From Fonticula alba ATCC 38817 (Eukaryota > Protista > Nucleariida), in assembly GCA_000388065.2 (NCBI GenBank), contig KB932215.1: a stretch of DNA of 39,998 nt; one strand, given 5' to 3'. Positions 16,870-36,661 of this stretch are shown one piece after another. The notes under the pieces were generated by a model. It saw only the letters and a program-made list of their open reading frames with translations, ran no database searches and was not told the DNA's origin. Numbering within the stretch: position 1 is the first letter of the stretch; the number at the start of each line of letters is the position of its first letter. Position numbers and translations under genes: made by a program.

Positions 16870-19759
16870 TCACCGCTTCTTGGCTTCCTTCTCGCGGCGT
16901 TTCTTCAGATGCTTCGGGGTCTTGGTTTGGCGCTTTTCCCGGTTGGCCTCCTTGACGGCCTTCTTGTGGGCCTTGCGCTGGGCCTTCTTGTCAGTGGGAT
17001 CGACGGCGTCATCGTCGCTGTCGCCATCCTCGTCGTCGCTGTCAGGCCCGGCAGCCTCATCGTCGTCCTCCTCCTCACTGTCATCCCCATCGGGACCACC
17101 CTCGGAGGGGACCTGCTCGAGGATGGCCGGTTCCTCGCCGGAGGCCGACACCACCGACCCATCGGTCTCAGTCTGCAGGCCGGTGAGATTCCGGTAAATG
17201 AGCCCATCACCATCACCGCGGAGGACCTTGCCAACGTCTCGCTCAACGTCAATGACCTCGAACAGGTTGCGCGGAATGTAGGCATTCATGAAGACCTCCT
17301 CGGCCACCTCGGCCGCGGCGGCGCTCGCCTCGTCCAGGACCTCCTCCTCGCGCACGGCAATCCGCGCCAGGTACGCATCCACCTGGTCGTCCTCCAGATC
17401 GCGTCCGGTGATGAAATCGAAGAGCTCCCGCCGGGACATGATGCCGGTGGTCATGTGGCCACGCTTCTTGAAAAACTCCGTGACATTCTCGATGTCCTTG
17501 CGCAGGAAGTCCAGCGCATACGGGTGATCGTGCTCGACCGATTGCGACACATCAATGATGTACAGGATGCCCTTGTAGTAGCTGGGGTGCGCCGGGAGGG
17601 AGGGGGGGAGGGGTGAGAAAGACCACGGCAAGGACAGACCGGCGTCGGGAAAGAGGAATGGCCGCGGGGAAGGGGGATCCGGGGGAGGGGAGGAGACGAG
17701 GCGCACATGATGTTGTACTCGGAGAGATCCGCATGCACAAGCCGGCACACGCGGTACATGGTCCGCATGCAGCGGACCAGCTGCATGTACAGCTCGGGGA
17801 AGGCCTTCTCCGGGAGCTGGGCGTCCTTCAACCGGGGACCAGGCCTGGGAAGGGGGAAATACCGAGGATGCCATGTCAGAAGCGAAGAAGACCACAAGGC
17901 AACAGGTGGGGGGAGGGGGGGACACATGGGAGAGAGCCCGGGGGAGAAAAGAGGAAAAAAAGAAAGGAGGAGGCGCGTACCAGCCATTCTTCCCGATGAA
18001 GGTCATCACCAGGACATGGTTACGCAGCTTCACCGGGTCCGGGCAGGGAATGCCAGCAGCCACGAGACTGGGAGGTGTGTTTGTGCACGCCGGCGCCATG
18101 TTAGTGCTGTGTGTGTGTGTGTGCGTCTTGGTGGTGGCCGCCGAGCAAAGCATGCATGGCCATGGGGGCCAGCAGAGGAGAGCAAAAGCACGCACCGCTT
18201 CAGGTTTCGCATTTCCTTCTCGGCCCACGTCTTGACCATTTGCCGGGGGTTGTTCTTCCCGTAGCCATGACGGAAGCGATACTCGCCGGTGACATACTTG
18301 TCGCGGTCCTTGAAGACCAGGATCGAGGTCTTATACACCTTGACCGCATACTCCACGCCCTCGCCGGTCAGGGCATGGTACACGTTGGCTTCCTTACCGG
18401 TGGACACACAGCCGTTGATCTCGTAGAAAATCCCCTGGGAAAGCATCTTGAAGAGAATCATGCGCGTGCGCGGGTCCAGGACCTGCTCGGTGGTGGCGCG
18501 ATTGGCCTTGTCCGCATGGCGAGTCCTGTGAGCGCAGAGTCAGCCCCTGAGAAGGAAGGACAAAGGGGGAAACAGCCAAGGTCATGGCGTGACTGGAAAG
18601 GGGGAATGAGGGGCAGCGGAGGAGCGACGCACTTAGAGCCCTCGGCCTTGCGTGACCCCTGGGAGCCGGCGCTGAAGTCCTGAATCATGTCTGGTGACAG
18701 GGAGAGGCAGATGGTTAGCAGCGGCAACACGAGAGAATGAAAAGGAGGAGGGGGAGGAGGAAAGAAAGAGCCGGAAAGAAGTGAAGGAGATTGAGAAGCA
18801 GGCGAGAGAGAGAGAGAGACCGGGAAGGAGGGGCGAGAGGGAGGCCAGGCGCCGATGCAGGAGGTGGCGAACGCACTTTCATTGATGCGCTCCTGCAGGG
18901 CAGCCAGCTTGACGCCAAAAAGCCCGGACTTGCTGTCGGCAGCACCGGCCGCGCCGCCAACACCGGCCCCCTCCGAGGCCTCGTCCGAGTCGCTGTCGGT
19001 TTCGGCCAGGAGGGAGGCAGCCGCCTGAGCGGCTTCAGCAGCCGCCTGGGCCAGGTCCGCCGACTCGGCACAGCCGGAGTCGCGGGCCCGGTCGGCGGCC
19101 GCCTGCGCCGCGGCCGCGGTCTCCTGCGCAAGGCGCTCCCGCTCGGCGCGCTGCTCGTCGCGCTTCTTCTGCTGCAGGGCACGCTGCTTGTTCTCCTCGT
19201 TCAATGCCCGGGCCGTTGCCGTGACGATCTTGGCCCGGCGCTGGACGGCGGCCGAATTCATGGCCCCGGCCACGCCGACACCGGCGCCGGTGGCGTTCAC
19301 CGCCCGGAGGTAGCGCTTGGTCATGTCTAAGCGGCGAGGTGCAGGGAGGGAGAGGGGAGATGGAAGAGGCGAGCGAACGAGCGCATCGCAAGGGAGCCAA
19401 AGGAATGTCAGGGGGGTGGGAGGGGGGGCCAGAAGCACAGCGAGGGAACATCGCGGGGGCACCCAAGGAGGGCGGGAGAAGAGGGACGCACCGCCCGTGG
19501 TGGATGCCTCGAAGAAGGCAATGTCATCGGGGTCGCCACCATGCCCGCCGAAGGGCGAGTCGCCATACAGCTCATCATCCGACAGCTCGGCGCCCGGGGC
19601 GTAGAGCTTTCGGCCCTCCAGCTCGGAGAAGGTGTCCACACAGGGGATCTGGAAGAAGTCCGACAGGGCAGGCGTGGACACCTCCGTCGGGGGCATTTGG
19701 GGCAGGTCGGCGCTCCGCTGCGGGGAGCCCGTCTGCGAGTTGCTCTCGGTGCTGCTCAT
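16870..19759 (-). CDS. RIO1: Atypical Ser/Thr kinase/ATPase RIO1 (40S maturation), about 680 aa
   Basis: Exons (minus) 19759-19492, 19326-18877, 18690-18633, 18525-18196, 18067-17981, 17844-17707, 17581-16870; phases close. Motifs: [85 protein letters not shown], and a RIO1-type basic C-terminus ([18 protein letters not shown]). Confidence 0.95.
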
Positions 19760-24225: not shown

Positions 24226-25610
24226 GCGTGTACGTGGATGTGGACGTGGGCGTGGACGTGGACGTGGACGTGGACGTGGACGTGGACGTGGACGCGTACA
24301 TGATTCGCCACACGCGCACACGTGTGCACATGCACGTGGAGAACATGCCCAGGCGCATAGGGACACCCATAACCATAACCGGGAAGAGGAGGAGATCGCG
24401 TTGACGAGCCCATGCGTTGGAGGGGGGGGGGGGGGGGGGGGGGAGCACAAGACAAGCGCACACCGACGCACACCGACGCACATCCACACATGCACATTTG
24501 CGGACGTTCGACAGACCAGGCAGCGAGAGGAAGAAGGAAGCAACCGACACACCGTTAGACACCGACACACTTGGCAAAAGGAAACCAAAAAGAGGCCGGC
24601 CGGGGGGCGAAGAGCTGCGCACCGTCCAGAAGCTCATTGTATGCGCGCTGGCCGGCCTCATCCAGATCCTCGGGCAGGATGCCACACGCGTCGAAAATGG
24701 GGCATCCATCACGGATCTCATGGAGCTGGAGATTCATCTGCTTGGCAAGGACCTGGTCGGAGAGATGCGAGGATCGCGACGGCACGAGGGAAAGACAACG
24801 CATGAGGAGACAGAGGCAGAGGCGCAGGGGCGGGCCCGGGCGCGGGCGCGGGCAGGGAGAACGACAAAAAAAAGAGCACAGGCCACTCCCCCAACACACC
24901 TGCAGCGGGTTGCCATTCTTCAGGCCGGTGACAATCATGGCCCCGGTGTCGGCGCCGTAGATCGGCTGCCCGGAGTCGGGCGACGTGGTGCCGGGGATGC
25001 CGCTGAGCATGCGCGAATCGATGCGCCCGCCCAGGTGCCCGCGCGATTCCAGCACCAACGTGCGGAAGCCATTATGCGTCAGGTGCCGTGCGGCCGCCAG
25101 CCCGGAGATGCCGCCCCCGACCACCACCACCGGGTAGCAATGCTGCCGCGAGGAGGAGCCGCTCTCGGCCTCCGACAAGGGGGGCCCCGGTGCCGCCGGC
25201 AGCGGCATCACCCCGAAGTTGATGAACCCATAGAACTCCAGGTAGTGGATGGCATTGTCGGCGATGTCCGGGTCGAAGGGAGTCCCGGAAGGCAGCTGTG
25301 CCCGGATGGACTCCTCGGCGGTGTCCACCGTCAGGCCATCATGCGAGGCGGACAGCTTGCGAATGCGCTGCAGCGGCGAGTCCAGCCACACACGCAGCAC
25401 CGCATTCCGATGGGCGATGTACACCTGCTCGCACAGCAGGTAGAAGGGGAGGACCATGCGCTCGTGCAGTGACATCCGATCCGGGGGCATGCGCGAGTCA
25501 CGTGCCGCATCGGCTGGTGTCTCCGGCTCCGGCGGCGGTGGCTGGCAAAACTGCTGCCGGAGCTGCTGACGGCGTGTGGCCACCCTTGGGCGGGCCTTGG
25601 CCGTGGACAT
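20354..25610 (-). CDS. Lysine-specific histone demethylase, LSD1/KDM1 family: SWIRM + FAD amine oxidase + C2H2 finger + low-complexity linker + probable second SWIRM, about 1220 aa
   Basis: Exons (minus) 25610-24900, 24752-24623, 24077-23100, 22901-22817, 22600-22345, 22186-20804, 20473-20354; phases close. SWIRM end HYLEFYGFINFG, FAD motif VVGGGISGLAAA, LGGRI, GAMIVTG, WHLANLEFAN, WDQDD, catalytic-Lys motif GFGVLNKV, TRWGSDP..GSYS, FFAGE....YPATVHGA..SG.RAA. The start codon is uncertain because the frame is open upstream. Confidence 0.9.
22661..22717. repeat. (GAA)n microsatellite in a KDM1 intron
   Basis: About 19 tandem GAA units, read as TTC on the coding strand. Confidence 0.95.
24175..24293. 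repeat. Compound (GT)n plus (GTGGAC)n repeat in KDM1 intron 2
   Basis: (GT)n at about 24175-24220 followed by about 10 GTGGAC-type hexamers at 24234-24293. Confidence 0.95.
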
Positions 25611-27052
25611 GGCTCTCGGGGGAGGGGGCGGGGAAGGAGGGAGAGAAAAAAAGAGGGAGAGAGCGAGACCGGGTTGGAGGAGGGGCGAGTGCGCGAGCCC
25701 AGGGAGGGGAGGTGGTCGGACTCCTGTCAAGTCGGAGGGGAGGAGGTCAGGAGGAGGAAGGGCGGGGGGAGAGGGAGGGGGAAGGAACGAGGGCCGGGGC
25801 AAACACACCTTACAACTGGCTACGGTTGAATTTGCGAGGGGGGGGGGGGGGATGGAGCACGCGGAAAGGTGCGTCCAGATGTTGCAGCTCGGGTGAGGGG
25901 GAAAGGGAAGGGAAAAAAGGGGGGGCGGGCGGAGGGGGCGGGTGAAAAAGGGAGGGAGCGTGACTCGGATGCCCGGCATGGCCTGGACAAACGTCCCGAA
26001 AAAGGACGGGCCTGGGCCGACAGAGATTGCCCCTTTTTCCCCTCCTCCTCCCTCGCCAGGCCGTCCCCACCCCCCGTGCCGCCGCCCACCGGGATGGGGA
26101 AGACGGCGGGGGGAGAGGACATAACCGAGTCCGACGACTGGCGCACGGACACCCGGAGGCCGATCACAGGCCGATACCCTGGGCCCCGGCGCGCGCGCGC
26201 GCGCGCGCACTCGGACGGGGGAAACACACACACACACACACACACACGCAGAGATACCTGGCTCGAGCGACGGGGCAACCGCCGCCGGGGAACAGGGCGA
26301 AGAAGCGTTGGCACATGCCACAAAAGCGTCCGAGGTGTTGTGGCCGGCTGCGACTCGCCCGGGCTCGCCCTTCTGGCCTACTTCACCCTGCCCCCGGCCG
26401 AGGAGGGGAGGAATGGGAATGAGGGGCGCGGAGCCTGGTGGCCGCAGGCGGGGGACCCGGTCGTTGGACCCCGGTCGTTGGACCCCGGTCATTAGACCCC
26501 TGTCCTGTCTCAACGGCCTGTGGCCCGCCCGCCCGCCCGCCCGCCACATGTCCTCGGCCCTCGGCCCTCGGCCCTCCCTCTCGCGCCCGAGGCCGGGGGG
26601 GGGGGGGGGGTCTGCCGAAGGTGCTTCTTTTTTCCCGGGCAGGACTCGCCGCCTGCTGGGGACGAGGAGCCACGCCCTCACCTCTCCCGGGCCGAACCTC
26701 GGCCCTGGGGAGGGGGGTTATTTTGCCCGCAGGACAATGGGTCGGGTGTGGGCGCTGTTGTCTGCCAGGGGGGGCTTCTGGGCCCGGCATCTCCCGGCCG
26801 GCGTGTGACCTTGCTCGCTTTTTTTCTCCCCTTCCTGGCGCGGTGTGCGGCAGGCCATCGGCTGATTCTTGCCCTGCATTTTCCCCGTGGCCACCGTCGC
26901 CAGTGGCGTCCCCCTCCCGCTCCCTCCCCCGCCCCCTGCTTGTGAGCTCCTTCCGTCTCAGGGTGCTCCAGGCCAAGACTGGGTCCACCGCTTCCCCTGC
27001 GTCCTTCGTAGGACTCCCTTCCTTCGGGGAAACCCGGCCCATATACACACGT

Positions 27053-29174: not shown

Positions 29175-32099
29175 TTAGCCCCCGCGGCTGAGCTGCGCAA
29201 GCACCTCAACCTCATTGTCCAGGAGCGCGTGCCGGCGGAAGAGGGGCAGCCACTCGCGGATGACCGCGCGGTCGGACGGCCGAAGGATGAGCGTGGCCGA
29301 GGCGGCCGATGCCCCGGCCCCCCGGGGGATGGCCCCGGCGATGGCCGCCCGCAGGGCCGTCGAGCTGACCGACTGCGGGGTGGAGATATTCCGCGGCCCG
29401 GATGAGGACGAGGAGGAGGAGGAGGAGGAGGAGGAGGAGGAGGAAGACCCCCCGCCGACGGCAGGGGAGAAGGCCCCGCCGAGGGCCGACGAAGTGGACG
29501 CACTGCTGGCGTGCGACGGGACGACCGTGACCACGGATGCGCCGCCGCCGCCGCCGCCGCCTGGCGCATCGATCGACGCCGGGGCCCCAGACACATAGAG
29601 CACCAGCTGGTCGAGGGCCGCCTTGGCCGACACCGTGGGCAGGAGCCCCGCCGTGGCCCCGGGGTCCCCGCCGATCAGCGGGCTGGCCAGGCCCCCGGCC
29701 CCGGCCCCGGCCGGCTCCAGTAGATATGTGATGGCGATGAGGTCGCGGCAGGCCGTCGCCGCCGCCGCCGCCGCCCCGGCCGCCGCCGGCGTGGCGGCCG
29801 ACGAAGCCAGCAGGGACTCCCCGTCGACCGGGGCCCCTGCCCGGGGAGCCGCAATCTCAATGGCCACATAGGCCACCGCATAGATGGGAATCGACAGGAT
29901 GGGCAGGCGCCGGCCGAGGAAGGCCTGCTCGCAGGCGTAGATGTTGATTTGCCCCCGCTCATACAGCACATAGCGCGAGTGCCAGTGGTCCAGGGTGGCG
30001 GTGCCGACGCCGCGCAAGGGCACCGACGCCGGCCCGGGCCCGGCCGACGGGGCGTGGGCCCCGGGGCCGGTGGTAGCGCCGCCGCCGCCGGCCAGAGCCA
30101 GACGCGCACTCGCCCCGGCACACAACTTGGTCTGGATGCAGGACACGGCACAGCCACAGTGCGCCGGCGCGGTGCAGGGCGCCACCATGGCACCAGCGGG
30201 GCCGGCGGCCGGCCGGCCGGCCGCCGGCACCGGGCTGCCGGGGCCGGCCCCATCGTCCGCTCGATCGCCGGCCTTGCCACCGGGCGAGGCGCCGCTCAGC
30301 GAGAAAGACCGAAGGGTCCGGACCGGGGTCGATGGGGGCGGCGCATCGGCCGGGGGGGCGGGTCCCCCGGCGCCCGGCGGTGACCCCGGCATCGGCCCGG
30401 CTGCGCCGGCCGCCGCGGTCGCCGCCGGCAGCTGCGGCGACGAGGCCCCACTCGAGTCGGCCGAATTCGGCCCCGATGCCAGGGGCAACAGCAGCTGGGC
30501 CAGGGAGGCCAGCATGAAGCTGCTCCCGCGCCAGGAACCCCCGGCAGACGCCAGCCCCGGGGCCGCAGAGGAAGAAGACACCGATGACGCCGACGAGGGG
30601 GAGGGCGAGGAAGACCCCCCCCCGGCCGGCTCCGGGGGAGGCGGCGCCTCGCCCCCGAACAGGCTCGTGGCAAAGGGCAGGCACAGGTGGTCCGAGTGGA
30701 ACTTCAGCACGGCCGCCGGGCGGAAGCCCAATTCCCGGAAGAGGGTCACATCGCGGAATTTGGTGTAGGCACAGGCCAGCTCGCGTGCGATGACATACTG
30801 CAGCAGGCGGCCCAGCTGGCCGAAGAAGGAGAAAATCGTGCACAGGTCCCCGACCACCATGTCCACGGTGGCGGCCTTGGTCACCTCGCACAGGGCCCCC
30901 ACAATCAGCGTGTCATACTGCAGCATGAGCTTGACAAACTCGATGGACTGCGGGCTCAGCAGCGGGTCGGCCACCTCCAGCAGGTAGGAGTCCGACACCC
31001 CGACCACCGACAGCGGCCGGTTGGGCGGCTGCGACAGCGAGGACGTCGAGGCGCTCTTCAGCCGGCTCAGCGTGCCGTACCGGCCCCCGAGCGAGGCGCC
31101 CCCGCCGCCGAGGAGGGCCCGCGCCCGCGAGGGCGAGGCGGTGGCCGCCGGGGCCGCCGCTGCCGGCTCCGCCGCCGGCCGTGCGAGCGGGACACTGGGG
31201 CTGGATTCCAGGGGTGGCTGCTCGTGCAGGTCCACATTGCTGGTGGCCAGCGATTGGCACAGGGCGCCGGCGAGGTCCCGGCGGAGCATCTGCCACCGTC
31301 GGGACATGGGGGGGGGGGGGAGAAGGGGGAAGGGCGAGCGGGCATTTCACAGGCCGCGTGGTCACGGGCGGCCGCAGAGGGCGCGAACATCCACCAGGTT
31401 AGCCAAGGGCCCCAGGGAGGGGGGGGGAGGGGGCGGGGGACAGCAAAGCCAGAAGGAAGGCAGGGCCGGCAGGCGCAAGGGGAAGGGGGGCGGGGAGGGC
31501 GGGCGAGGGAGGGACACAGAGGAAGAAGGAAAAAAAAAAAGGGCAGCGGCGAGCCAGCCCCAAGTCGCTGGTCGACACGCACCAGCAGCTCCGCGGCTCG
31601 GAGCTCCGAGTCGGACAGGGCCGAGGAGGCGGGGGCCCGCAGGCGGGGCGTGGTCGCGGCATAGGCCGATGCCCGGCGCAGGGGAACGGCCAGCTGGCGC
31701 ACCAGGCGCCGGACGGACTTGCGCACCGCGGAGCTCGGGGCCGGGGTGTCCACATGCCCGGCGGAGGGGCTGATGGGCGACGAGGCGCCGCCGGCCCCGG
31801 CGCCCGACGCGGCTGACAGACGGTCCGGGCTGGACGCGGCCCCGGGCCCGGTCGACGGGGAGGACGAATGCATCAGCAGACTGTCGTAGGTTGTCCGGTA
31901 GGAGGAGGCCGGGCTGGTCCGGTCATTCAGGTGAACCAGCCTCTCATTCAGCTCGGCCGTCGACAGGGGAGGCGGCGCCCGGTCCAGATCCGGCGGCGGG
32001 GGGGGGATAGCCTGGCCCGGGGGCAGCGGCGCCCCGGCCACCAGGACCAGCGGCTCGGCCGTGATCTCCGTGGCGATGTGCGTGACGACATTGCTGCCA

Positions 32100-32134
<35 letters not shown>

Positions 32135-34349
32135 CGTAACCGCTGCCGGAGTGGCTGGGCTGGCGCTGCGGGCAGCCGCAGCCACCGGAGCAGGCGGCGC
32201 CGCGATGGTGGTGTCGATGGCCGACGCCGGCCCGGCCGGGGTGGTGGCCGGGCTCGGGGCAGGGCTGGCCACCGACATGGAAACCGCGTCGGCCTCCGGC
32301 CCCCGGGGGCCCGGCTGCTGGCCCGAGGGGAGGGGCGCCGCCTTGCCGGCCGACGGCGGAACCGGCGGCCGCCCGGGCGGCGGCTGGCTGGTCACCGTCT
32401 CGCTCTGGCCGAGGATCTCGATCAGGGCCACCGAGCGCCGCCGGGCATTGTTGCCGGCCGCCGCCGGGACACCGCACAGGATGGAGTCCGGCCCGGGGGG
32501 CGGATGCCCCAAGTGATAGAGGCCCTGGTTGGTGAGGACCAGCGCGTCGCCGGCCAGGCCCAACGGCGACACCGAGTACAGCAGGTCCGAGTGGGGGCTG
32601 GTCGAGGAGGAGGTGGACGAGGAGGAGGAGGTGGACGAGGAGGACCCGGGCGCCAGGGCGGCCATCATGCCGCCGACGGTCGGGAGCGACGCCCCGCGGT
32701 GATGGTGGGCCCCGGTCGGGGGCAACATCGATGTCGGCGATGGGGGGACCACCGCGGCCGCGCCGTCAGCCCCCCCTGGGACCCCGGCCGCCCGGCCCGG
32801 GACCTGCATCAGGGGCATGGAGGCCGACATGCCGGCCGTCCGCAGGGACGACAGGGACCCATACTCCCGGAGGGTGCCCTCTTCGTGGGGGGCCGGGCTG
32901 TCGGCAGGCTCGGCCATCAGTGAGTCCAGCGACGAGCCGGGCGACGCGGTTTCCAGGGCCGCCGCATAGGACGGCGGGGTGCCGGTCCCGGCGCTGGCGG
33001 GGCGCGCCCCGAGCGGGGTGTCCGGCGGCGAGAGAGGGGCCACCGGCGCCGGCCCGGGGGCGGTGCCTGGGACGGAGGCAATGCCGTCAGGACCGGCGGC
33101 AGGCTCGGCAGCCCGGGAGGCGGGCACGGCGCCGGGCCGAGAGACGACATGCTATGCGAGAGCAGCCGGCCGGGCGCGGGGAGGAGGGGCGTGGGAGCGG
33201 TTAGTGGAGATGGATGGGGGGCGGGGAACACACATGGGGGAACAAACACCAGGGGAGGTGTGGGGGGGGNNNNNNNNNNNNNNNNNNNNNNNNNNNNNNN
33301 NNNNNNNNNNNNNNNNNNNNCCCCCGCACCCACATGCATATGCACACATGGCGGGGGAGACCGCGGCGCGGCAGCCGAGGCACCGAGGGAAAGGGGGGGG
33401 GGGGGAGAAAAGAGAGATCGAGACACACGTTAAACAAAAATAGGTCGTAGAAGTCCGAAATCCGGGGCTCCAGCTCCTCCAGCAGCGGGTTCAGCGACAG
33501 CTGGTGGAGCTGCTCCTTGGCCAGGGGCCCGGTGCTGCCCGGGGCCGGGGGGGAGAAGCGCGAGCCATTGGCCATCATCTGGATGACCTTGACCACGGCC
33601 ACCAGATCGTCCACCCGCTCGGGGCTGATGAGCCCGGCCGGCACGGCGGACGGCAGGTCGTCCTCGCCGTCCTCGGAATCCGAGTCGTCGTCGAACTGCA
33701 TGATGCCGACCGTGTGCGGCCGAGCGATGGCCGGCCCGAAGAACCGGAGGAAGAGAGTGGCCCGCGTGGTGGCGAGGGCGGCACTCTCGCCGAAGGTCTT
33801 GGCCATCTGAGGGGGGCGGAAGCGGGGGGGGGGGGGGGGACCAAGCAGGTTAGAAACCACCGAGGGGAGGGGGTGAGAGAGCCAACAGAAAGGGAGGGCG
33901 CATTTTTCGGGCATGCAAACAGGGGGGCCCCCCCCGAGGCTGCGCACCTCCGAGTAGTACAGGCGGAAGAGGTCCCGGAAGCCCGGTGGGGCGAGCTCCG
34001 GCGACTGGAGAATCGGATCCAGCAGCAGCCGGACCGCGGCCGTCAAATGCCTGACCGCGGCTTCGGGATCCCCGGACGACTGCCGGGGCCAGGGGGGGGG
34101 GACGGGACAAACGTTGGCAGAACGAGACCCGGGTCAGTGATCGGAAAGGGCTGGGAGGGGAGGGGAGGGGAGGGGAGGGGAGGGAATAGAGAGAAGAAGA
34201 GAAAGAGAAGAAGAGGAGAAGAGGAGAAAGAGAGAAAGAGAGAAAGAGAGAAAGAGAGAAAGAGAGAAAGAGAGAAAGAGAGAAAGAGAGAAAGAGAGAA
34301 AGAGAGAAAGAGAGAAAGAGAGAACAAGAGAACAAGAGAACAAGAGAAC

Positions 34350-34386
<37 letters not shown>

Positions 34387-35292
34387 CAGACGAAGGCACA
34401 GCCATAAGACACATACCCGGAGGGAGAGACGCGGCGCGCGGCGGCGGATGATGGCGCTGACACCCGGGCGCAGAACCTGCGCCAAGTACGTGCGGGCCAG
34501 CTCGAGCCCCCGCTTGGCCAGCAGGGCCGACGCCACGGTGGACCCCCGGAGCAGGGTGGTCAGCTCGTGCTGCGGGAAGCGGAAGGGCTGGATGCCGCCC
34601 GGCGGAGGCTGCATGCCGTCGGAGGTGGCCGCGGCGACGGCCGTGGCGATGGCCACCGCCGAGGGGGTGGCATTGGAAGAGAGCCCGGCCGCGGCGGCGG
34701 CCTCCTCGACCGTGGCGGCGGGGGGGCCGCCGGCGCCCGCCGGCGCCGGAGGCACCGGGCTGACCGGGCCATCAGCCAGCACGGCCTGCGAGTAGAAGGA
34801 CGCCACCGTGGCATCCAGGCTGGCCGATCGCGAGAGGGACACCCCGCCGGAGAGGGGCCGGCTGCCGGCCGGCGCGCCGCCACGACGCCGGGGACTGGCC
34901 ATGCGCACCAGGTCCGACTCGCAGGGGGACACCACGGTCAGCCGCGGCAGGACCCCGGGCGCCGGGGGCTCCGGCGTGAAGGGGACCACGATGGCCGGCG
35001 GGGCACGCGATGACTCCGCCCGCCAGCCGGCCGACGAGCAGGACATCCCGGAGGAGGACCGGCTGATGGACGGGGATCCGGACCCGGCCCCGGCCGACGA
35101 GGAAGAGGAGGACATGGAAACCGAGCGCGAGTGGTAGCCACTGGAGGGGGGCTGCTGCTGCTGCTGTTGTTGTTGCTGTTGTTGCTGTTGTTGCTGCTGT
35201 TGTTGTTGTGGGGAGGGCGGGTGCTCGGTCCCGGTGGCATCCGCCGGCCCGGGAAGCCCGGCGGTCGGGAGGGTGGCTCCGAAGACGGACAT
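29175..35292 (-). CDS. Large RasGAP-family protein with polyQ, split RasGAP segments, low-complexity linkers and a C-terminal PH-like domain, about 1690 aa
   Basis: Exons (minus) 35292-34417, 34079-33948, 33806-33429, 33151-31583, 31289-29175; all four introns phase 0. RasGAP signatures TTLLRGS, YL...L.P, FLRFFGPAI..P, KVIQMMAN, KE; Q19 at 35152-35208; PH-like W..RYVLY..GQINIY...LILRPSD..V..EWL. The start codon is inferred. Confidence 0.82.
34150..34385. repeat. Polypurine tract with (AGAGAAAG)n, (AGAACAAG)n and (GA)n in RasGAP intron 1
   Basis: About a dozen AGAGAAAG octamers (about 34225-34320), a few AGAACAAG units, then (GA)n. Confidence 0.95.
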
Positions 35293-36661
35293 CACGGGCA
35301 GCAGAGCTGCTCGGGAGGCGGTGGCGACGGCGGTGGCGGCGACGACGGCAGGTGGCGGGGGGTGGGGCGCCTGATGGCCCAGATCATCGGCAGGCGCGGG
35401 GAGGACACGCGCGCGAGAGGGAGGGAGGAGGGGGCCGGGAGCGGGGCAGAGGGGGAGGGCGGAGAGCAAAAGGGCGACGAAGAGAGGGGGAGAGAGAGAG
35501 AGAGAGCAGGGAGGAGGCAGGGGGAGGGAGGGGGGACCGATGCGCCAGGGGAGGGGGGCTGGTCGAGAAAGGGGTGCCTTCGCCTCGGGGAGGGGGCCCG
35601 GTCGCGGGGGGGCAATTTTGAGCACCGCCCGCCGAGGCCGCCCCTCCCCCCCCCCCGCCCCGGGCTCCAAGGCGGAAACAAAAACAACGGCCCTTTCGCG
35701 GGGACGGAAAGGGGGGCAGGGGTGGTGCAGTGTGTATTCCCTCCCGGCCTTCCCCGGGGGGGGGGGGGGAAGCCGGGGTGTTGGGGAGCATCCATATCCA
35801 ACCCGCCGGCAGCCGCCGCCGCCTGTGCCCGGCCGCGGCGGGCGCGGTCGCGAGGACCCCCGCCAGACGGGCAGCGCATGCCAGAGGGGGGAGGGGGATG
35901 CGGTATGTGGGGCCAAGCTGGGGCGCCCTGGCGCGCCGGCGCCTCCCCCCCCCCGCCTCGCCGGGGGTGGCCTCGGTCAATGTCGGGCGTTGGGTCTGGC
36001 TGCGCTTGTTGCTCCGCCCGCCGCCCCCTCCTCTGAGAGGGGCGGCGTCCGCCCCGAAGGGCACCGGCTGGCCGTTGCTGGCACGGGGGCGCGCAAGCCC
36101 GTGGCATTTTCCGGCGGCTATGGCCCCGGCCAGCCTGCCGGGCTGCCCCCCTCCCCCCGGGGGGGGGGGGGGGACGGGGCCCCCGAACCCCGCCGCGCAC
36201 CAGCCAATAATACGCCCCTGGTGGCGGCCGGGCCGCCTGGGTATGGGGGCTGGGAAACGAGCCCGGGGGCACGCGCGCGCGCGCACCGTCGGCGGCGGCA
36301 CGGCAAATGCCCCGGGGCCCGCCGGCCGGGCGCACCCCCCCCCCCCCCCGGCACCGAAGGAGATGCCGCCCGGCCGGTCGACGCCGGCGATCTCTCGGCC
36401 AAGGAAAGCCCGCGCACCGAGGAGAGAGATGCGCGCGTGTCGCGACCGGGGCGCGGGGAAAACGGCCGGCCCCGGGTGCGGGGCACGCACGCGGCCCGGT
36501 GGGGCGGCTTTGGGCCGGAAAGGGGGGAGGGAGGGGGCTCGTTTCTGGGGAAGGGGCCGGAGGGGGGGGGGGGGGACACCAGCGCAGGGGCCGGGGCTTG
36601 TTTTTTTGCCTTGCCCACATTAATTTCCACCCCGCCGGGCACGCATGCGAAGGGGCGCGCC

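Follow-up and report, generated by a model that had tools for sequence, protein, structure and literature searches.

A 39,998-nucleotide stretch of contig KB932215.1 from Fonticula alba ATCC 38817 (GenBank assembly GCA_000388065.2; the whole stretch is hereafter called the window) carries, on its minus strand, a gene whose product holds two blocks that cover complementary parts of a RasGAP domain in reversed order, with an overlap at the arginine-finger loop only. The first block is a putative catalytic core that starts at the finger; the second, encoded some 920 residues after the first finger, resembles the helices that lead into the finger in canonical RasGAPs, so that the finger motif occurs twice. 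Both blocks belong to one 1,689-codon coding sequence (CDS). Whether the downstream helices complete one RasGAP fold with the core, as a circular permutation of the domain, is in our judgment evenly poised. A split and permuted RasGAP had been proposed for this gene in an original prediction drawn up from the letters of the window, and every motif quoted there is found on the minus strand where it had been placed.

Evidence that the two blocks share a transcript comes from two RNA runs of the organism that the window belongs to (X1 and X2), whose Logan contigs were placed on window positions 29700-35699. Four introns are spliced in these contigs, with CT..AC on the plus strand corresponding to GT..AG for a minus-strand gene; one 1,338-nt mRNA contig crosses the first three (34900 to 32808), and the fourth is crossed by a 2,073-nt X2 contig (32091 to 29805). 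Together, the RNA contigs tile 34900 to 29805 save for two uncovered pieces of 42 and 53 nt, which lie at repeats where reads are cut; no single contig covers the whole gene, and RNA coverage at the upstream end stops between 35,300 and 35,500. In the joined exons, a single reading frame stays open between 35916 and the stop codon (29175-29177), its first ATG being at 35292, and the junction of the intron that holds an assembly gap leaves this frame intact. In a window with a G+C content of 65-77%, the in-frame G+C content at third codon positions (GC3) is 0.82-0.96 in each 100-codon interval from about 35,200 to the stop. It is 0.68-0.76, with no periodicity, in three of the four introns, in the DNA upstream of about 35,300 and in the 3' flank, and about 0.5 in the microsatellite-rich first intron. 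The RNA junctions, the open spliced frame and the continuous GC3 thus place both blocks in one CDS; the single transcript that the original prediction had presumed for both halves is borne out by contigs that are colinear across the gap-holding intron and across the junction from linker to second block, with frame and GC3 unbroken. Since the assembly gap (33270-33320) lies within a spliced intron, the coding sequence is unaffected by it. The features of the gene are as follows (window positions, all on the minus strand).

29175..35292, minus strand: whole CDS, 1,689 codons in five exons, ATG at 35292-35290 and stop at 29177-29175, from RNA junctions, the open spliced frame and GC3.
34417..35292, minus strand: coding part of exon 1, with 235 low-complexity residues (polyQ, Ser-/Ala-rich) followed by the first finger and alpha2c; a contig is colinear from 34900 to 34417, and GC3 periodicity runs from about 35,200.
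34528..34569, minus strand: first arginine-finger loop, HELTTLLRGSTVAS, with its Arg at 34548-34546 (residue 248).
34080..34416, minus strand: intron 1, 337 nt, GT..AG, packed with GA/CT microsatellite and spliced out in contigs from both X1 and X2.
33948..34079, minus strand: exon 2, alpha4c-5c segment with PPGFR at the PPxLR position, from hhalign to the p120/NF1 profile.
33807..33947, minus strand: intron 2, 141 nt, GT..AG; junction in X1 and X2 contigs.
33429..33806, minus strand: exon 3, with FLRFFGPAI, an acidic insert, KVIQMMAN and the last core helices to ..FYDLFLFN, from hhalign, Pfam, phmmer and Atlas.
33152..33428, minus strand: intron 3, 277 nt as assembled, GT..AG, holding the assembly gap; junction 33429/33151 in X1 and X2 contigs and bridged by one X2 contig.
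31583..33151, minus strand: exon 4, 523 residues, mostly low-complexity linker; overlapping RNA contigs except at two short repeats, GC3 0.84-0.95.
31290..31582, minus strand: intron 4, 293 nt, GT..AG; junction in X1 and X2 contigs.
30774..30944, minus strand: second block, equivalents of alpha-ex and alpha1c, from hhalign, shuffles, alignments, Atlas and composition.
30732..30749, minus strand: second finger-like motif VTLFRE, with its Arg at 30737-30735 (residue 1170), read from the sequence.

GA/CT microsatellite arrays, with an 8-nt period (GAGAGAAA) followed by GA repeats, fill intron 1 (34080-34416) and recur at 35454-35526, and RNA depth is zero at 34100-34299 because of the arrays there. 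From X12 and X17, two large polyA RNA-seq runs that bear the same species label, only G- or C-homopolymer reads were placed on 29700-35699; probably the label refers to a different organism, or else the gene is not expressed in those runs.

Because Pfam and phmmer matches were weak and no relatives were recovered from large protein libraries, small profiles for hhalign were built from solved RasGAPs: A1 (p120GAP and NF1) runs from the first 'extra-domain' helix to the finger, A2 (p120GAP, SynGAP and NF1) from FLR to K..Q..AN, and A3 (p120GAP and NF1) covers alpha4c-5c. The p120GAP segments used are 100% identical to PDB chains. Against exon 1 (292 aa), A1 matched through columns 65-78 only, at HELTTLLRGSTVAS (57% identity, P=0.0036), and the pre-finger helices (A1 columns 1-64) were not matched anywhere in the 241 residues before the first finger. 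A3 matched exon 2 over 39 columns (P=1.9e-4) and A2 matched exon 3 with a probability of 95 (P=4.5e-8), in which FLRFFGPAI lies at 33752-33726 and KVIQMMAN at 33590-33567 (minus strand). The three RasGAP segments of the first block are consecutive and colinear; on the linker exon, used as a control, A1 and A2 gave P=0.66 and 0.76, respectively. Moreover, the ten best named matches of exons 2-3 in the ESM Atlas are all RasGAPs (score 0.94, 197 of 256 features in common), and the weak top phmmer matches of exon 3 in the PDB include SynGAP and NF1 (3bxj best, 6ob2 third). When single exons were scanned with Pfam PF00616, the best match was at FLRFFGPAI (E=0.05, profile positions 163-184); this check, proposed with the original prediction, did place a RasGAP match at the expected motif, but below the gathering threshold. 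By its motifs, the segment of residues ~236-465 is a putative RasGAP catalytic core in which the finger, the secondary arginine of FLR, PAI and K..Q..AN are all kept. The first GAP segment was thus correctly described as beginning abruptly at the finger after low-complexity sequence and as running from there to the end of the domain. A 20-residue acidic insert (DDDSDSEDGEDD..; 33650-33710, minus strand; residues ~372-392) lies between the FLR..PAI and K..Q..AN helices, at the variable-loop position of solved RasGAPs.

The pre-finger part of the domain has its counterpart in the second block, where LIVGALCEV begins at 30908 (minus strand). Columns 7-62 of A1 aligned with residues 39-95 of the second block (56 columns, one gap, 29% identity, P=0.011); among 300 shuffles, just two scored as high in hhalign as the real sequence, and the reversed sequence gave P=0.18. 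Semi-global BLOSUM62 alignment gave z=2.9 against p120GAP and z=4.3 against NF1 in an identical register, and an exact TLFR stands about three residues from the position that the second-block alignment predicts. In the ESM Atlas, about 74 of 100 neighbours of the second block belong to RasGAP or plexin families, and with a query limited to the 80 residues ahead of the second finger the share is 80 of 100 named neighbours. To put these values in scale, p120GAP and NF1 themselves reach only E=0.13 against one another in the pre-finger region (PDB search), and the A1 profile fails to find SynGAP and IQGAP. Real RasGAPs therefore diverge strongly in this region, and the modest score of the second block is to be seen in that scale. 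Other searches returned little: phmmer of the second block against the PDB was blank, HMMER against 1.84 billion representative proteins gave no orthologue, only a spurious bacterial GA-module repeat protein, and word-indexed protein searches with the first exon, the exon 2-3 read-through and the second block recovered no relatives.

The composition of the second block sets it apart from its surroundings. It has the highest hydrophobic fraction (0.5 VILMFWYC) and the highest sequence complexity of the whole protein, and its helices are spaced as in canonical RasGAPs, without low-complexity inserts. The G+C content at second codon positions is 0.43 in the second block and in exon 3, 0.58 in exon 1, 0.48 in exon 2, and 0.65-0.8 in the linkers. 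Canonical helix spacing and an intact TLFR amid a flood of low-complexity sequence, together with a core in which the motifs are all kept, suggest that the second block is still structurally constrained, and the simplest reason for such constraint would be packing on the core as in a normal RasGAP.

Taken over the whole protein, profiles A1, A2 and A3 split cleanly between the two blocks, in agreement with the earlier proposal that the halves are complementary and reversed; the A1 match, the shuffles and the Atlas neighbours likewise uphold its claim that the second block resembles the N-terminal RasGAP helices leading to TLFR, a similarity the lack of which had been named as fatal to it. After the second finger, the sequence continues into non-consensus residues and then into low complexity, and no RasGAP core was found in the 239 residues there (A2 and A3, P=0.55 each; nothing in Pfam). 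The gene thus lacks the second catalytic core that would define a tandem double RasGAP, and it has the N- and C-terminal domain parts in swapped order within one polypeptide, which is one of the two marks of a circularly permuted domain, the other being that the swapped parts fold into the same three-dimensional domain. With residues counted from the ATG at 35292, the product is a largely disordered 1,689-residue protein with the following layout.

Residues 1-235: low complexity, including a 20-residue polyQ.
Residues ~236-465: RasGAP core, with the finger (Arg248) at its start and the last core helices at its end.
Residues 466 to ~1075: mostly low-complexity linker of ~610 residues.
Residues ~1080-1170: pre-finger helices, closed by the second finger (Arg1170).
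Residues ~1190-1400: low complexity.
Residues ~1410-1689: PH-like by eye, with no support from Pfam or PDB searches.

In the proposed arrangement, the downstream helices would dock back on the core and complete one RasGAP fold, giving a circular permutation whose new termini fall within the finger loop and whose halves stay connected through a long, flexible tether. The 'extra' domain of p120GAP brings the helices of both termini into contact, which leaves the native ends near one another, and the finger loop of p120GAP lies exposed. Proximity of the ends and exposure of the loop both favour a permutation of this kind. We suggest more tentatively, and with less than even confidence, that a RasGAP cut in this way, with a finger at both new ends, may be regulated in its assembly and in its choice of finger and be switched on by intramolecular complementation. 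Of the two fingers, the first is more likely to be catalytic because it is contiguous with alpha2c and is nearer to the consensus. A C-terminal 'extra-domain' helix near 31289 was also considered and was dropped, since BLAST against the C-terminus of p120GAP was negative; it should be noted that the C-terminal region of p120GAP is not conserved even among solved RasGAPs.

Several observations weigh against assembly of the two blocks into one domain. The similarity of the second block is modest when taken alone (P ~0.01), and when the block was compared pairwise with p120GAP or NF1 by BLASTP, nothing meaningful emerged. For the core, the best single-exon PF00616 score is 13.9 bits against a cut-off of 28.3, a value obtained with exons scanned singly. 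No orthologue or paralogue sequence was available for comparison, so that constraint on the second block is read from composition alone, and single-sequence AlphaFold of the second block by itself gave a predicted local distance difference test score (pLDDT) of 42, which is unusable. To our knowledge, a tether of ~610 residues far exceeds that of any known permuted domain. Lastly, one X2 contig leaves the window at 34611, and a canonical tgcag acceptor stands in frame at 34609/34608, which could point to an isoform with a different 5' exon.

The layout is consistent with an origin by tandem duplication and reciprocal loss, as originally suggested, because the finger loop survives on both sides: after tandem duplication of a RasGAP domain, copy 1 would have lost its N-terminal part and copy 2 everything past the finger. 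Neither BLASTP between the first-finger exon and the second block nor a search for DNA-level repeats gave a match; given that the finger regions hold no residual protein or DNA similarity, such a duplication would be old. In the general model of permutation by duplication, a tandem repeat is trimmed at both ends to give a c-a-b order, and partly truncated intermediates are predicted (PMC3320104). The same layout is equally predicted by duplication followed by decay, in which case the second block would be the stub of a lost tandem RasGAP, perhaps reused as a small helical bundle or binding module, that does not complete the core, and the core would either tolerate the loss of its pre-finger helices or be an inactive pseudo-GAP. 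The passage of the second finger into non-consensus and then low-complexity sequence and the very large distance between the blocks agree with this account. A useless stub, however, would be expected to erode to low complexity, and the second block is instead the best-preserved and most hydrophobic island of the protein, with canonical spacing and an intact TLFR; further, the retention of all the catalytic motifs in the first core is not what a dead domain would lead one to expect. Minimal active fragments of NF1 and p120GAP include the helix before the finger. On balance, we regard a relic second domain as a serious but somewhat doubtful explanation.

A normal-order domain could also arise if an alternative 5' exon from outside the window were spliced to the acceptor at 34609/34608 and supplied the pre-finger helices, leaving the downstream block as a relic, and it is here that the contig that departs at 34611 matters. 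On the coding strand, its loose letters encode ..SQELIDIEHV followed by a CAG shared with ..tgcag, in frame with PPPGGIQPF..HELTTLLRG. The 30-mer at this loose end is absent from the 40-kb window, including the 5.4 kb upstream, and from metagenome contigs; the extra RNA depth in that bin is small; 11 of the 14-17 placed contigs lie only partly on the stretch, and the other loose ends within exons all fall on GC-rich low-complexity stretches, resembling partial matches of unrelated transcripts. Moreover, the region that would be skipped (34609-35250) has an in-frame GC3 of 0.85-0.98 and colinear contigs, and it is therefore a coding exon; no coding-like segment was seen in the 4 kb upstream of the gene. 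The divergence at 34611 could stem either from an alternative 5' exon of minor use that lies elsewhere or from a partial match that arose by chance, and we consider it improbable that helices are supplied in this way. Upstream exons that supply the missing helices had been recognised as a threat to the original prediction: the colinear transcript has none, with coding low-complexity sequence before the first finger, but the loose end at 34611 stands as a caveat. Misassembly at an N gap, a merger of two genes, or motifs that arose by chance in a GC-rich sequence where open frames abound might be suspected in a draft assembly with eight N gaps in the window, where long spurious open reading frames (ORFs) are common at 74% GC and where the gene is pieced together from several RNA contigs. 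Independent RNA contigs are nevertheless colinear over the gap-holding intron and over the junction from linker to second block, leaving only the 42 and 53 nt uncovered, frame and GC3 are continuous, and the profile matches are specific with negative controls; such an artefact is largely refuted and is in our view very improbable.

Canonical RasGAPs (p120GAP/RASA1, 1WER; the neurofibromin GAP-related domain, 1NF1; SynGAP, 3BXJ) share with the first block a colinear TL(F/L)R, PPxLR segment, FLR..PAI and K..Q..AN, and their pre-finger helices are recognisable in the second block; unlike them, the Fonticula protein has these helices ~920 residues after the finger, has the finger twice, and has ~610 low-complexity residues between the parts. 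In plexins, an inserted Rho-GTPase-binding domain divides the GAP sequence into segments that keep the normal order, which shows that the fold tolerates splitting. Plexin GAP has a RasGAP fold that acts on Rap, with a primary finger arginine and a second, stabilising arginine equivalent to Arg903 of p120GAP (PMC3787391). The protein described here is like plexin in its predicted RasGAP fold and two-arginine machinery, and plexin clusters are among its Atlas neighbours; it differs in that the plexin insert is a folded domain and the order is normal, whereas the Fonticula protein has the reversed order and, between the segments, 610 disordered residues that belong to no Pfam family. Saposin/swaposin and the DNA methyltransferases (PMC3320104) follow the same logic of a trimmed tandem repeat, and the finger loop present on both sides here is as in an intermediate of that process; in those systems the common fold is structurally proven and the joins are short, whereas in the present gene the fold is predicted and the join spans hundreds of residues. 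Finally, in the GAP1 family (RASA2/3/4 and RASAL1) a RasGAP is followed by a PH domain, which recalls the order of GAP and C-terminal PH-like region seen by eye here; unlike in that family, no C2 domain was detected, and the PH-like region has no Pfam or PDB support.

The remaining parts of the gene and its surroundings are summarised below.

29178..29987, minus strand: C-terminal region, recognised by pattern only, with a hydrophobic strand-like N-terminal part, a terminal helix with ..REWLPLFRRH.. and long poly-Ala/Gly/Ser inserts.

For the assignment of this region as PH, Pfam gave nothing at E<=10 and the PDB search no relevant match; the linker exon 4 matched no Pfam family. Downstream of the gene, on the same strand, an ORF at 24558-26681 (minus) encodes a SWIRM domain together with the first part of a flavin amine-oxidase domain, and the next gene is therefore, by its domains, of the KDM1/LSD1 type. 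An ORF at 16873-18228 (minus) encodes a RIO kinase domain (Pfam E=1e-19).

Few signalling modules have been studied as thoroughly as the RasGAP domain. We know of no RasGAP domain with its segments in permuted order, and a full-text literature search for RasGAP and circular permutation returned nothing relevant; the gene could represent the first case in nature of a circularly permuted RasGAP fold. If the two halves do not assemble, the gene would still document clearly how a domain decays once it has been duplicated in tandem, in a proteome that evolves fast and is rich in low-complexity sequence. If they do assemble, the RasGAP fold can be cut at its catalytic finger loop, and the gene would be a natural instance of the duplicated, half-trimmed intermediate that permutation by duplication predicts. 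Assembly would, in addition, provide a simple route to GAP activity that is conditional on tether-controlled complementation, and would be of interest for the engineering of split GAPs.

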